From assembly GCA_048013815.1 (NCBI GenBank), contig CM106585.1, positions 372,001 to 436,000 of the forward strand: DNA of 64,000 bases, in the 5' to 3' direction. Positions within the stretch are counted from its first letter, which is position 1. Every line of letters begins with the position of its first letter. Source of the DNA: Setoptus koraiensis (taxonomy: Eukaryota; Animalia; Arthropoda). Positions 46,514 to 51,359 of the stretch are shown one piece after another. The position numbers and the translations under genes were made by a program. The notes under the pieces were generated by a model. That model did not search any database and had not been told where the DNA came from. It was given only the letters and a program-made list of their open reading frames with translations.

Positions 46514-47700
46514 ATGCTTTACCTAGTGGGACTCGGACTCGGAGATGCCAAGGATATCACAGTGAAAGGGTTAGAAATTGTTCAGCGTTCCAAAGAAGTT
46601 TTCTTAGAAAACTACACATCTATACTAGGATGTACCCAAGAGGAGTTGGTTAGTATTTTAGCGATATGTAGATGTCGATAGGTACCCTTGAGATAACTTA
46701 TTGATAGTAATAACTATATATATTTATATATATATTGTGCATTATCATTACATTCATCCATCCACTGCTTATTCAACAAATAGGAAGCATTCTACGGTCG
46801 GACAGTTATACCAGTCGACCGTGAAATGATGGAACAGGGATGCAACCGCATTTTAGATAGTGCAAGTGAAGGAGATACCGCCGTTCTAGTTGTTGGCGAT
46901 CCTCTAAAGTTAGTCTTGATCAATATGCGAACGAAGTAATTCAGCCTCTCGGCAATCTAGCAACGATACTGAATGTCCCTTTTCATTCCAATTCTCCAAC
47001 ATGTTGTGTTATTTAGTGCCACTACTCACACGGATCTATTGCTCCGGGCATCTAGCAGGAAGATACCTTATCAAATCATTCATAACGCCTCTATATTGAA
47101 CGCGGTAGCATGTTGTGGCTTGCAAATCTACAATTTTGGCGAGACAGTTTCTATACCATTTTGGACGGATACGTGGAGACCTGAAAGTTTTTATGACAAA
47201 ATTATGAGGAACCAATCGAACGGCTTACACACCCTATGTTTACTAGGTAAAATATTTCTTTTCTTTTAATAACCAGTTACTATCATCTATTCACTGTAAA
47301 TGTAATAATTAAAATCGCATCACGTTGTTCCTTTTATTACTGTATAATCTCAGATATTAAGGTCAAGGAACCAAATCTAGATTTGCTCATGAGAGGGATA
47401 ACCAAAATGGAGCCTGCAAGATTCATGACTATCGCAGAGGCCGCAACACAATTAATAGAAATCATCAGGAATAGACAACAAGAACAAGCTTGTGACCAGA
47501 ACCAATCAACCAAGAAAAACCTCCAAGAAGAAAGCTTCTGCATCGGTCTTGCTAGAATTGGTAGCTCTCAACAAAAAATTTCCAGGACCACGCTGATTGA
47601 AGCCACTAATATCGATTTTGGTCCTCCCCTGCATTCCTTGGTCATTCCAGGTAGTATGCATCCCTTAGAAGAAGAAATGGTCGACCTATTGTCGAGATGA
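46514..47700 (+). CDS. DPH5: Diphthine methyl ester synthase; exons 46514-46648, 46784-46908, 47017-47246, 47354-47700
   Basis: [102 protein letters not shown]. Three GT-AG introns keep the frame. Confidence 0.96.
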
Positions 47701-47784: not shown

Positions 47785-49580
47785 CTATACTGATATGGTT
47801 TTCAAAGCATCCTCGTCGTACATTTCAATCAATGCGTAACTACCATCATTGAATGGGTAGGTTTGACGACTATCCAATACTAGACAACCGTCCTGCATCC
47901 TTGATTTAACCTCTAACATCTTTGGGTAACCTCGAGGTTCCAAAGTGGGGCCTGTTGCATAGTCTACAGGATCCCTGATAGAATACGCCATAATAGGCTT
48001 TGTGGCTGGGAATGTCAACATTTCATTAAACTCCTTAGCAACTCTGAGTGTGTCAACATTAGGTAGTTCAATTCCATGTTGGCCTGATATTATTTTTAAT
48101 ATTGATTGGACTTGATGCGCAGTCAATTTGTTCATATTCAAATTCCAGGAAGTAGATCCAGTCCCAGTACATACAGCCAGACCTGAACTTTTTACTTTGA
48201 CAGGTCTGTTGTTATTGATGGATAGTTCGAAATATGATACTCTGGCGGATAGAGCCTCCCCAACAAAAACTTCATTGAGAGCCTTCTCTTTGATTTGCTG
48301 AATTTTAAAAAAGACTTTACCGTCAACAGTTTGATAAAAACTTTTGGATTCTTCATTATTAGAAGTGTTTGTGGCAATCGAGCCGACGACATAACCGTTC
48401 GGAGTTAGTAATTGACGCTGTTGTTCTTCAGAATGACAAGATGTTTGACGCATTCTCGATGGTGATCTACTCCTGGCTGGAGATGAAGGTTGATCATTAC
48501 TATCTTCTTGATCTAAATAATGGTTTGTTCGTTTGTGATTATTTCTTATATCATTCAATTCACGCGGGTCTTCGTCCGCTGCTTCACCTATTAAAGTAAT
48601 TCGAAGTCTTTGTCTATATTGCCATTGGTATCGTCCATCTTTTAGTAACTGTATGACTCTTTTAAAGTTAGTAGAATATTCTTTAGGAAGGCACAGGTGG
48701 CCAACAGACTTTGTTGGATCACTATTTACTCCTATTACTGGTTTATCACGGGTTATAACTTTCGAGGCCGCCATCAAAAATGTACCATCGCCACCACTTG
48801 TGACTATGACGTCTGCCCAATTAATTTTGTCCTCAGTATAACCATGTCTATCGACAGTTTGAAATTCAATCATATCGTCAGCTAAGGCTGACTCAATCTG
48901 GTGCAAACATGATTTGTGCACTTGATCGTAGTGCTTCAAGGATTCATAGTCGGAACCTCTCTCAGATAGCTAAGAAAACAATTAGATAGAATCAGAGAGA
49001 GAGAGAGAGAGAGAGAGCTATGATGAATAATCTAGCACTCGCTTAAGAATTGATTGCAATTTTCTAATTTGTACGAGCGAGGACAAATCGATTCGAGAGG
49101 TTTAGAGCAACTTAAGTTCTAACTTACGTTCGATTTGAGCTGCTCTTCATTGAATTCAGGATGAGTTAACCTCTCATATTCAAGCCGGGAAAATTTTCTA
49201 AGTATTAATGCTCGACGTGGCAGGAATGGCTTCTCAGAATGGACTAAAGTATGGCTTCTACAAGTAGTTGAGTGATGTAATAAATGATCCATAGATGCAG
49301 CTTTAATCGATCCAGTTAATGTCATAGTTTTCGACGAAGAGTGTATTGAATTGGTACGTTTGTATGATCTCTTTTGGGATTCGCCAATTAAAATAGTGTA
49401 GTATTGCTTGTGAACAAGTGTTTGGCTTCCAGTAATATGATAACTATTAGAATCCAATAAAATTGTTTTGTTTATGTTACTTTGGTTGCTCCTGTTTCTA
49501 CTCGATGTTACAACCACAATATTACTTGCTTGTCTCGACTTCAAGCGTATCTGATTAGTAAGTAATCGCAATGACATCAT
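47785..49580 (-). CDS. NADK2: Mitochondrial NAD kinase 2; exons 49580-49128 and 48969-47785
   Basis: FLPRRALILRKFSRLEYE...EEQLKSN|LSERGSDY joined across a GTAAGT...TTCTTAG intron. WADVIVTSGGDGTFLMAASKV, PVIGVNSDP, ALNEVFVGE, KSSGLAVCTGTGSTSW motifs. N-terminus is Arg/Ser/Leu-rich and acid-free. The start codon is inferred. Confidence 0.92.
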
Positions 49581-49986
49581 TCAGTCTTAGTAGGCAATTT
49601 TTTTGTATGCCAATAGGCGTTTCAAGATTGTCGACAAGCATGTGTGTTAATTTACTATCACAACCAACAACTAGTCCTGTTAGAGTTCGTCCAGCTACGT
49701 CTGATTCACTGAGAAGTGTTATTTTGATATTGCTGATATTACTGCTATCATGACTATTATTAGTGTTAATCAGGTGCTTGTCTATCTTTTCTTTCTCCTT
49801 TTCTTTTTCTTGCAATTGTTTCTGTAATGGTGATGTCGATTGGGTATGGCTATAATCGATATTAATATTGTTATTACTCTGAGATAATTTTATTAGTTCA
49901 CAAAGAAACGATCTGCGCATTTGAGCTCTTGCGTTTACCACTGTATCCATTTGAGAATCATTTATCACAGTGGTGTTAGTTGACAT
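49555..49986 (-). CDS. GEMIN7: Gem-associated protein 7 (SMN complex, Sm-like fold), intronless
   Basis: ARAQMRRSFLCELIKL resembles the Gemin7 ARAxLRERYLRSL helix. C-terminal LVDNLETPIGIQKNCLLRLNDVIAITY matches VSxLQTPIGVQxEALLRxSDIIS. Confidence 0.88.
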   Translation of the reverse strand: MSTNTTVINDSQMDTVVNARAQMRRSFLCELIKLSQSNNNINIDYSHTQSTSPLQKQLQEKEKEKEKIDKHLINTNNSHDSSNISNIKITLLSESDVAGRTLTGLVVGCDSKLTHMLVDNLETPIGIQKNCLLRLNDVIAITY

Positions 49987-50654: not shown

Positions 50655-51359
50655 AAGGATGTGTTGCATTTTGGGTCGATTTTGAAAATTTTTGCTGTGG
50701 GTATCTATCGTTGGAGGTATGATAGAGCACCCCGAGTGGCGCCCATCGGGCCGGCCCGCGCACTGGAACCACCTTGCGGTCGGGCGTTACCGCGGTTTTA
50801 GTATTTTTTTTTTGTTTGGGGCCCCACTTCGCATAGAAAGATAGGATCGGCGGAGATGTGACTATGCTCATTGTGTAGAGCGACTCCCAACCGACAAAAT
50901 GAGCGAAAAAAATGTTGAAAAAACAACGGAGGTCGGTGTGAAAAACCGCAAGACCCGAGCCCCCTCCCCTGACCGCGCATAGGAGAAATGCAAATAGAGC
51001 AGCCAATGAGCGGACGAAATCTGCACATCTCCTATGCGCGGTCAGGGGAGGGGGCTCGGGTCTTGCGGTTTTTCACACCGACCTCCGTTGTTTTTTCAAC
51101 ATTTTTTTCGCTCATTTTGTCGGTTGGGAGTCGCTCTACACAATGAGCATAGTCACATCTCCGCCGATCCTATCTTTCTATGCGAAGTGGGGCCCCAAAC
51201 AAAAAAAAAATACTAAAACCGCGGTAGCGCCCGACTGCAAGGTGGTTCCAGTGCGCGGGCCGGCCCGATGGGCGCCACTCGGGGTGCTCTATCATACCTC
51301 CAACGATAGATACCCACAGCAAAAATTTTCAAAATCGACCCAAAATGCAACACATCCTT
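50655..51359. mobile_element. 705-bp palindrome: 332-bp inverted arms (2 mismatches) around a 41-bp spacer; MITE/foldback-like element
   Basis: Arms 50655-50986 and 51028-51359 pair without indels. Visibly richer in G+C than the flanks, with sharp boundaries. No transposase and no target-site duplication seen. The inverted repeat is certain; the mobile-element interpretation is inference. Confidence 0.6.

Follow-up and report, generated by a model that had tools for sequence, protein, structure and literature searches.

Here, we present an analysis of the junction between the genes for Gemin7 and NADK2 in a 64,000-nt stretch of Setoptus koraiensis DNA (the window). We found that the two genes lie on the same strand, that their coding sequences overlap out of frame by 26 nt, and that this overlap is not a chance feature; because the same ATG and the same open frame behind it recur in 12/12 loci, it goes beyond what chance would give. 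We give an even chance to the reading in which Gemin7 and NADK2 make up a single conserved dicistronic unit of two overlapping genes, which arose in the eriophyoid-type mite lineage.

The upstream gene is a minus-strand ORF (49986..49555, 143 aa) with the end ...CTG AAT GAT GTC ATT GCG ATT ACT TAC TAA. It matches Pfam PF11095 above the cut-off (E 8.2e-12), and a profile of 12 orthologues matched human Gemin7 (PDB 1Y96_B and 7BBL_D; E 5e-8), with the alignment at the C-terminus. The NADK2 ORF opens with ATG ATG at 49580/49577 on the minus strand, in the +1 frame relative to Gemin7, and stays open to 49128, where a GT donor (49127/49126) and an AG acceptor (48971/48970) join exons 1 and 2 in frame. 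Exon 2 carries NAD kinase domains (Pfam PF01513, above the cut-off, and PF20143). NADK2 has 1250 homologues; those with names are tick, spider, and mite proteins called "NAD kinase 2, mitochondrial" (1e-80 to 1e-90) rather than cytosolic NADK, and GGDGT and the core motifs of NADK2 are invariant. Based on these domain, structure, and homologue matches, both gene identities proposed in the first-pass annotation hold, and both ORFs of the same-strand, out-of-frame overlap that it described are seen. The NADK2 intron is absent in L001, L002, L004, and L007, and its position is shared by relatives in which the called protein begins at this site or continues across it. An exact-protein database look-up for Setoptus koraiensis gave no match to the window's Gemin7 protein, and an Rfam search of the window matched no family. 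The features of the locus, all on the minus strand, are as follows.

49555..49986, minus strand: Gemin7 CDS, 143 codons plus TAA (ORF, PF11095, profile match to 1Y96_B, and alignment)
From about 49920, minus strand: Gemin7 conserved core, from MRRSFL (alignment)
C-terminal end of Gemin7, minus strand: Sm-like domain, which ends ...LRLNDVIAITY (alignment)
49657..49662, minus strand: Gemin7 TGT GAT (Cys-Asp), ~80 nt upstream of the ATG and the same in 12/12 loci
49618..49620, minus strand: ACG codon for Thr in Gemin7, at −42 relative to the conserved ATG and the same in 12/12 loci (core ACGCC)
Directly upstream of the tandem ATG ATG, minus strand: TGA in the NADK2 frame (sequence)
49575..49580, minus strand: tandem ATG ATG, the second of which (49577-49575) is conserved in 12/12 loci
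49555..49580, minus strand: dual-coding overlap of 26 nt, in which Gemin7 N-D-V-I-A-I-T-Y-stop corresponds to NADK2 M-M-S-L-R-L-L-T-N
49221..49580, minus strand: NADK2 N-terminal extension of ~120 residues (presequence-like composition, dN/dS, and open frame)
49325-49323, minus strand: NADK2 Met86, within the N-terminal extension
49292-49290, minus strand: NADK2 Met97, within the N-terminal extension
49128..49580, minus strand: NADK2 exon 1, 151 codons, which ends ...EFNEEQLKSN, has the conserved core FLPRRALILRKFSRLEYERL at its 3' end, and aligns with intronless relatives
48970..49127, minus strand: NADK2 phase-0 intron, GTAAGT ... TTTTCTTAG, which holds a (TC)n run
47785..48969, minus strand: NADK2 exon 2, 394 codons plus TAG (NAD kinase N- and C-terminal domains)

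The comparison covers 12 distinct loci, i.e., the window and L001, L002, L004, L006, L007, L008, L009, L011, L012, L016, and L022. All contigs of the relatives are genomic, as they retain introns or intergenic DNA; their NADK2 is 55-95% identical, and the relatives are most likely eriophyoid mites. The first-pass annotation had proposed to check related genomes for conservation of the overlap, and it is kept throughout: Gemin7 and NADK2 directly adjoin in this order on the same strand in 12/12 loci, the NADK2 start is in each case the ATG made by the Gemin7 Asp-Val codons GAT-GTN, and the NADK2 frame is open from this ATG into the conserved kinase core in all of them. The overlap measures 56 nt in L008 and 26 nt in the 11 other loci; in the window and L006, it comes to 23 nt if counting begins at the conserved ATG. 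In the outgroups Oppia and Tetranychus, Gemin7 and NADK2 are not linked and, thus, the pair appears to have come about through genome compaction; the suggestion of the first-pass annotation that snRNP assembly and NADP(H) synthesis are functionally coupled finds no support. In one sequenced eriophyoid, the median intergenic distance is 538 bp (PMC7738191), so that a distance of −26 nt between Gemin7 and NADK2 is not simply the usual gene spacing.

Gemin7 and NADK2 likely share a transcript. In a scan for the poly(A) hexamers AATAAA and ATTAAA in the 120 nt after the stop codon, we found a hexamer after Gemin7 in 0/12 loci, after NADK2 in 8/12, and after 11/17 of the other genes at the same loci (Fisher 9e-5). 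In seven of the eight loci with a hexamer after NADK2, it lies ≤16 nt from the stop; in the window and L006, no canonical hexamer follows NADK2. Because Gemin7 is not followed by a poly(A) signal in any of the loci, a shared transcript is favored, and this transcript is most likely a dicistronic mRNA. The region after Gemin7 is itself coding and the coding background is about one hexamer per 1.3 kb; thus, the missing AATAAA may reflect coding background only. The two genes have the makeup of a dicistronic pair, i.e., they are same-strand neighbors with neither a poly(A) signal nor a spacer between them, and this is conserved across the loci. Altogether, these genomic patterns make it probable that a dicistronic Gemin7-NADK2 transcript exists.

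On such a transcript, NADK2 would have no 5' region of its own and would start at the ATG in the Gemin7 GAT-GTN codons, with eight to nine codons left to the Gemin7 stop. The Gemin7 mRNA would extend across NADK2 as far as the AATAAA located at the stop of NADK2, and some of the ribosomes that finish Gemin7 would remain bound to the mRNA and initiate again at the AUG that precedes the Gemin7 stop by 23-26 nt. We tentatively suggest, at somewhat below an even chance, that termination-coupled reinitiation of this kind is the main route to NADK2. In viruses, reinitiation after a long ORF works within ~30 nt, and the restart codon can precede the stop (review PMC10275272). The NADK2 start lies at 23-26 nt from the Gemin7 stop in 11/12 loci, i.e., within this distance, and at 56 nt in L008. 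What counts against reinitiation at NADK2 is that, in eukaryotes, reinitiation after 77-183 codons is normally inefficient.

The 3' end of Gemin7 is constrained at synonymous sites. Of its 12 amino acid-invariant codons, four are also codon-invariant in all 12 loci, compared with 6/188 in the NADK2 core (Fisher p 0.0013); among the fourfold columns of this core that are amino acid-invariant, 0/56 are codon-invariant. ACG makes up 10% of the Thr codons in these genes. This excess of synonymous invariance points to a putative nucleotide-level element upstream of the restart site, and ACGCC at −42 is a candidate cis-element; TGT GAT, about 80 nt before the ATG, forms a second patch of such invariance. 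RNAalifold gave a consensus of −2.6 kcal/mol with no convincing covariation for the junction in 10 loci, i.e., no conserved RNA structure, and UGGGA, the TURBS-type motif that is complementary to 18S rRNA and flanked by a stem, was present before the restart site in only 1/12 loci. We speculate that eriophyoids have a cellular, TURBS-independent form of reinitiation in which ACGCC (−42) and TGTGATA (~−80) would hold the post-termination 40S subunit for a restart upstream of the stop, which would allow a miniaturized animal genome to run many housekeeping pairs, Gemin7-NADK2 included, from single promoters as translationally coupled polycistrons; we regard this wider proposal as rather unlikely.

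The invariant synonymous sites fit equally well with a promoter nested in the Gemin7 CDS. According to this explanation, NADK2 would have its own transcript, a monocistronic mRNA whose leader is very short, the overlap would reflect tight packing only, and any dicistronic read-through RNA would give Gemin7 alone. The genome is extremely compact, the invariant ACGCC (−42) and TGTGATA (about −80) could be promoter elements, and CpG-rich AACGC/GCGC motifs occur in some of the Gemin7 upstream regions. CpG-rich GCGC/TCTCGCGAGA-like boxes are found upstream of Gemin7 in some loci and not in the window. However, six loci have an ATG at −54 relative to the NADK2 ATG, and L001, L004, L007, and L011 have ATGs 21-31 nt before it, so that a nested start site would have to sit within ~20-50 nt of the NADK2 ATG, inside the most conserved codons of Gemin7. 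Moreover, AAACGCCY is not recurrent in the window (2 matches versus 2.7 expected), and Gemin7 would still be without its own poly(A) signal (0/12). On balance, we consider a nested promoter unlikely but deserving of serious attention. Upstream of Gemin7 itself, we found no shared promoter motif in that no k-mer was common to >5/10 loci. A scan for bacterial-type promoters and terminators stayed at shuffle level and is not meaningful for a eukaryote.

For the start of NADK2, it is highly probable that the overlap is real and that the protein begins at the overlap ATG. The N-terminal extension between this ATG and the core contains 0 stops in 758 codons from 11 loci, while the other two frames contain 46 and 68 (P about 2e-26); the first-pass annotation had named stops in the upstream part of this frame in close relatives as evidence against its proposal, and the frame is open in all of them. 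Between the window and the close relative L006, the extension has a dN/dS of 0.28 (Fisher p 1.2e-4) and two indels of 9 nt each, both in frame. These patterns show that the extension is under purifying selection. Its composition in the window is 16 Arg+Lys, 8 His, and 4 Asp+Glu. The first 30 residues contain 5 Arg and 1 Lys and lack acidic residues, exactly as previously counted, and are presequence-like; in the loci compared, the first 40 residues contain 3-7 Arg/Lys and 0-2 acidic residues and are Ser/Thr-rich. Thus, the composition of this fast-evolving, basic extension fits a candidate mitochondrial presequence, which would target NADK2 to mitochondria.

Alternatively, NADK2 translation could begin further downstream, at Met86 or Met97 of the window's protein and at a core-proximal Met in relatives, in which case the upstream frame would be an untranslated leader and the overlap would have no functional meaning. 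Met86 and Met97 are in frame at the positions given for them earlier and are both kept in L006, and in most of the other relatives the FLPK core is preceded by a Met at a distance of 3-6 residues; the Met just before the core (M-T-E-K-P-F-L-P) is kept in many relatives and could be a second NADK2 start. However, the stop-free upstream frame and the low dN/dS and in-frame indels of the extension speak against an untranslated leader, the core-proximal Met is absent from the window, and the short M-T-E-K forms would lose the basic presequence-like segment. The extension varies from 12 to 130 residues across the loci, and in L008 and L012 10-16 residues separate the overlap ATG from the conserved core, with no other usable start. 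A start of the Met86/Met97 type, which the first-pass annotation had listed as a finding that would go against it, therefore cannot be the rule, and we consider a downstream start very unlikely.

RNA processing could also resolve the pair, with a polycistronic precursor divided either through the trans-splicing of a spliced leader or through an alternative cis-splice that leaves out Gemin7 and lands just before the NADK2 ATG. Operons resolved by trans-splicing exist in nematodes, flatworms, and tunicates, and 11/12 loci have an AG at −10 relative to the NADK2 ATG. However, this AG is part of a common Arg codon (AGA/AGG) and is absent in L004, which has CGA; there is no pyrimidine tract, a donor-like GTRAGW is missing upstream in 10/12 loci, the Rfam search found no SL RNA in the window, and we know of no report of trans-splicing in mites. 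Processing of this type is, in our view, highly improbable. A programmed +1 frameshift in the overlap, giving a Gemin7-NADK2 fusion protein, was among the mechanisms considered in the first-pass annotation and would match the +1 position of the NADK2 frame relative to Gemin7, but it can practically be dismissed, as the NADK2 frame contains a stop 0-9 nt ahead of the ATG in 6/7 loci, which leaves only about 26-35 nt for the shift, neither a conserved shift-prone motif nor a stimulatory structure is seen, the ATG is conserved in 12/12 loci, and an N-terminal Sm-fold would bury the presequence.

Simple leaky scanning, which had previously been judged unlikely, was rejected: AUGs are not depleted upstream of the NADK2 start, with seven ATGs before it in the window and three to eight in relatives, which is about the expectation from composition. 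The Gemin7 start has a pyrimidine at −3 in 6/7 loci.

Conserved overlapping nuclear genes for two proteins are rare in animals, and the mechanisms of their translation are mostly unsettled. In the literature, no paper treats Gemin7 and NADK2 as a gene pair, and the sole co-mention is in an unrelated mouse thalamus study; in a Demodex paper, the word "polycistronic" refers to mitochondrial transcripts. The human RPP14/HsHTD2 mRNA has been shown experimentally to be bicistronic and is conserved (PMC4705651). As in the mite pair, the upstream ORF encodes a small subunit of a nuclear RNA-processing complex, the downstream ORF encodes a metabolic enzyme of mitochondria, and their functions are unrelated; however, the human second ORF lies in the 3' UTR of a vertebrate transcript and does not overlap the first, whereas the mite ORFs overlap by 26 nt on what is probably a common transcript. 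Drosophila stoned A/B, SNURF-SNRPN, and GDF1-CERS1 likewise give two proteins per unit via reinitiation or leaky scanning (PMC4705651). These units resemble the mite pair in that unrelated proteins are encoded in one conserved animal transcription unit, but they usually have a spacer, while the mite CDSs overlap and the downstream start lies inside a conserved motif of the upstream protein.

Similar in geometry are calicivirus VP1/VP2, influenza B M1/BM2, and pneumovirus M2-1/M2-2, in which a long upstream ORF is followed by an out-of-frame ORF whose AUG coincides with the stop or precedes it by up to about 30 nt. Termination-reinitiation in these viruses requires coding sequence ahead of the stop (PMC10275272). 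By contrast, the mite pair consists of cellular nuclear animal genes in which UGGGA is absent (11/12) and no stem is conserved, leaving only the invariant synonymous sites.

If Gemin7 and NADK2 share an mRNA and NADK2 is made by reinitiation, the pair would show that the viral stop-start mechanism has a cellular counterpart, the existence of which is an open question according to a recent review (PMC10275272), and would explain how gall mites could shed promoters during genome shrinkage. The locus provides a natural test case in which the only conserved start codon of an essential mitochondrial enzyme lies within another gene, and it comes with 12 independent natural variants, which differ in extension length and have overlaps of 26 or 56 nt, and with pinpointed candidate cis-elements. 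Overlapping genes have been recorded in eriophyoids: a Floracarus perrepae preprint lists 369 overlapping annotated gene pairs (10.64898/2026.08.24.746826), and an analysis of A. lycopersici merged overlapping CDS without comment (PMC7738191). These papers give counts only, without pair identities, strand relations, conservation, mechanism, or polycistrons. Because gene finders split, truncate, or miss one of the partners, eriophyoid annotation must allow for same-strand overlaps; among the gene models for NADK2 or Gemin7 in the relatives, six were called short or left uncalled.

Gemin7, which encodes a subunit of the SMN complex, and NADK2, which encodes the mitochondrial NAD kinase, genuinely overlap, and do so throughout the lineage: the last Gemin7 codons also contain the start codon of NADK2 and, read in another frame, encode the beginning of its predicted presequence. 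Upon re-reading of the ORFs, all sequence details of the first-pass annotation (the Gemin7 end, ATG ATG at 49580/49577, and the +1 frame) were correct. The gene models are:

49986..49555, minus strand: Gemin7 ORF, 143 aa, ending ...AAT GAT GTC ATT GCG ATT ACT TAC TAA
ATG ATG at 49580 and 49577, through 49128, minus strand: NADK2 exon 1 ORF, in the +1 frame relative to Gemin7
49127-48970, minus strand: NADK2 intron, phase 0, with a GTAAGT donor at 49127 and the 3' end TTTTCTTAG
48969..47785, minus strand: NADK2 exon 2, with NAD-kinase domains

The assigned identities also hold. The first ORF matches Gemin7 in Pfam (PF11095, E 8.2e-12), and a profile of 12 orthologues aligned with human Gemin7 (PDB 1Y96_B, 7BBL_D) through the C-terminal strand (E 5e-8). 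The second has NAD-kinase domains, and the named homologues, from ticks, spiders, and mites (~42% identity), are called 'NAD kinase 2, mitochondrial'. The exon 1 ORF ends exactly at the GTAAGT donor; after splicing, NADK2 has 545 residues, and its conserved core (FLPRRALILRKFSRLEYERL...) starts ~120 residues past the first Met.

The closest NADK2 matches have 55-95% identity and lie on contigs that often derive from samples associated with plants, while named mites and ticks reach only ~40%. The relatives' loci are nearly without introns and their genes are tightly packed; published eriophyoid genomes are ~32-35 Mb with two chromosomes (PMC11879100; PMC7738191). We infer that the source lineage is an eriophyoid-type mite. 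Related NADK2 neighbourhoods were taken from public assemblies and metagenomes as genomic loci with introns and intergenic DNA retained, giving 12 distinct loci (the window, L001, L002/3, L004/5, L006, L007, L008, L009/10, L011, L012/13, L016, and L020-22).

In all 12, Gemin7 lies immediately upstream of NADK2 on the same strand, and the NADK2 frame opens at an ATG formed from the Gemin7 Asp-Val codons GAT-GTN, within the conserved Gemin7 ending LRLNDV(I/V)(A/S)I. Counting from this ATG gives an overlap of 26 nt for nine loci, and of 23 nt for L006 and the window, both of which have an extra ATG 3 nt upstream that brings it back to 26 nt; in L008, which lost the usual Gemin7 stop, the overlap is 56 nt. 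Because an NADK2-frame stop lies 0-9 nt 5' of the overlap ATG in six of the seven loci tested, the NADK2 ORF begins at this ATG. In L007, L009, and L011, the overlap was masked because automatic gene calling placed the start at a downstream Met or overlooked Gemin7; the frame is actually open in each.

The sequence that separates the overlap from the kinase core (the extension) is coding. Across 11 loci, its NADK2 frame has 0 stops in 758 codons, whereas its other two frames have 46 and 68 (with the observed stop rate of 7.5%, P about 2e-26); the upstream frame is, thus, open in relatives and not broken by stops. Locus selection does not explain this openness because no locus with Gemin7 upstream failed the stop test. 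Compared with the close relative L006, the window extension shows a dS of 0.36 and a dN of 0.10 (ratio 0.28; Fisher p 1.2e-4), and both of its 9-nt indels are in frame. It ranges from 12 to 130 residues, with much Arg, Lys, His, Ser, and Thr and few acidic residues, a composition that appears as expected of a mitochondrial presequence plus linker. In L008 (MSLQSLKHLFLPKKALVLRKF...) and L012 (MLLPFHIIEKSRKLIMFLPKK...), the core follows the overlap ATG almost directly and, therefore, no downstream Met is usable as a start. These two loci rule out, as a general rule, initiation of the kind the first-pass annotation had allowed for at the in-frame Met86 or Met97. A Met 3-6 residues ahead of the core is kept in many relatives and could yield a minor second NADK2 isoform. 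In L008 (335-1846), the ancestral phase-0 intron (the site of 49127-48970 in the window) has no stops and keeps the frame, so that the automatic gene call translates it; this intron is also where several other NADK2 models in databases begin.

In the oribatid mite Oppia nitens, the NADK2-DPH5-Mo25 neighbourhood is as in the window, and an opposite-strand cation-efflux gene lies upstream; in Tetranychus, neither neighbour is present and this gene order is absent. Gemin7 was not found by tblastn in either locus. Because the linkage is absent at both, the Gemin7-NADK2 junction is derived in the eriophyoid-type lineage. The position homologous to the mite Asp-Val is Asp-Ile in human Gemin7; a change of Ile to Val beside a GAT codon creates the NADK2 ATG. 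Genome compaction, with loss of the separate 5' region of NADK2, seems to have produced the pair; nothing points to the functional coupling of snRNP assembly with NADP(H) synthesis that had been suggested. Convergent with NADK2 is the intron-containing DPH5 gene (diphthine synthase, TP_methylase; 46514-47700, plus strand); 84 nt separate the two stop codons in the window, and 3-57 nt in relatives.

Although synonymous sites are otherwise at saturation across the 12 mite loci, 4 of the 12 amino acid-invariant codons of the Gemin7 3' end use one codon only (TGT-GAT at -28/-27, ACG at -14, and GAT at 0), compared with 6/188 in the NADK2 core (p 0.0013) and 0/56 among its fourfold-degenerate residues. 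GAT at position 0 is invariant because it is part of the NADK2 ATG. The others are:

49618-49620, minus strand: ACG (Thr), same column in L001-L022
49657-49662, minus strand: TGT-GAT (Cys-Asp), same columns in L001-L022

ACG is rare, accounting for 10% of Thr codons. ACG and TGT-GAT seem to mark a nucleotide-level function 42 and ~80 nt upstream of the NADK2 start, possibly a promoter or a reinitiation element.

A poly(A) signal was scored when AATAAA/ATTAAA occurred no more than 120 nt past the stop:

NADK2: hexamer in 8/12 loci, 7 of these within 16 nt
Other genes of the same loci: hexamer in 11/17
Gemin7: hexamer in 0/12 loci

Gemin7 differs from all other genes (Fisher 9e-5), with the caveat that the region 3' of its stop is coding and hexamers are rare there anyway; a canonical hexamer is also absent after NADK2 in the window and L006. 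The Gemin7 mRNA, thus, has no obvious end before the NADK2 signal, and a dicistronic Gemin7-NADK2 RNA probably exists under either reading of translation discussed below. AATAAA is often right at the stop codon in these mites. For NADK2, it lies -5 to +16 nt from the stop, in some cases overlapping it (L001 6491, L002 6488, L004/L005, L008 1846, L009 4331, L012 3226), implying 3' UTRs of almost no length and poly(A) sites that abut the convergent DPH5 or lie within it.

No signals for a splicing-based resolution were found at the junction, and no SL RNA was seen in the window. Two readings remain, reinitiation and a nested promoter. Tentatively, we suggest that termination-coupled reinitiation could be the main route to NADK2, whereby ribosomes ending Gemin7 would restart at the AUG 23-26 nt upstream of the Gemin7 stop. 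The geometry fits because this distance is inside the ~30-nt range of viral termination-reinitiation, in which the restart codon may precede the stop (PMC10275272). The constrained Gemin7 sequence is also compatible with reinitiation; however, the sequence upstream of the NADK2 start has neither a canonical TURBS motif (the viral upstream element, UGGGA) nor a conserved stem. A promoter nested inside Gemin7 would account for the same invariant sites; however, ATGs at -21, -31, and -54 in several species confine its start site to within ~20-50 nt of the NADK2 ATG, and we regard it as somewhat less likely than reinitiation. Mixed or other routes take up the rest. The doubt cast earlier on simple leaky scanning is upheld, as 3-8 ATGs precede the NADK2 ATG without ATG depletion, making this route unlikely. 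The +1 shift, which would make a Gemin7-NADK2 fusion, is very unlikely given the NADK2-frame stop just 5' of the ATG, the conservation of this ATG, and the lack of a detectable shift site or structure. Altogether, the earlier interpretation stands, sharpened, for a real overlap, now seen to be lineage-wide, and lacks support for functional coupling and the +1 shift.

Gemin7-NADK2 adds to the known conserved nuclear genes that overlap or are dicistronic. Among cellular genes, its nearest counterpart is human RPP14/HsHTD2, in which an RNA-processing subunit and a mitochondrial enzyme share one mRNA (PMC4705651), while viral stop-start systems are the closest mechanistic models (PMC10275272). In our literature search, no paper treated Gemin7 and NADK2 as a pair, and polycistrons are not a topic of the published eriophyoid genome papers; one preprint gives a count only, of 369 overlapping annotated gene pairs (10.64898/2026.08.24.746826). 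As a candidate for termination-reinitiation in a cellular genome, the pair is well defined, and it apparently falls within a wider pattern of miniaturised mite genomes.

Several relatives (L007 ~2090-2100, L008 ~15-45, L009 ~2680-2740, L012 ~1500-1530) carry CpG-rich boxes similar to TCTCGCGAGA and to NRF1-type TGCGCATGCGCA/GCGC motifs ahead of Gemin7; these are absent from the 160 nt before the window Gemin7 start. A near-perfect 705-bp palindrome (window 50655-51359) lies ~670 nt upstream of this start and may bear on where transcription of the Gemin7-NADK2 unit originates.
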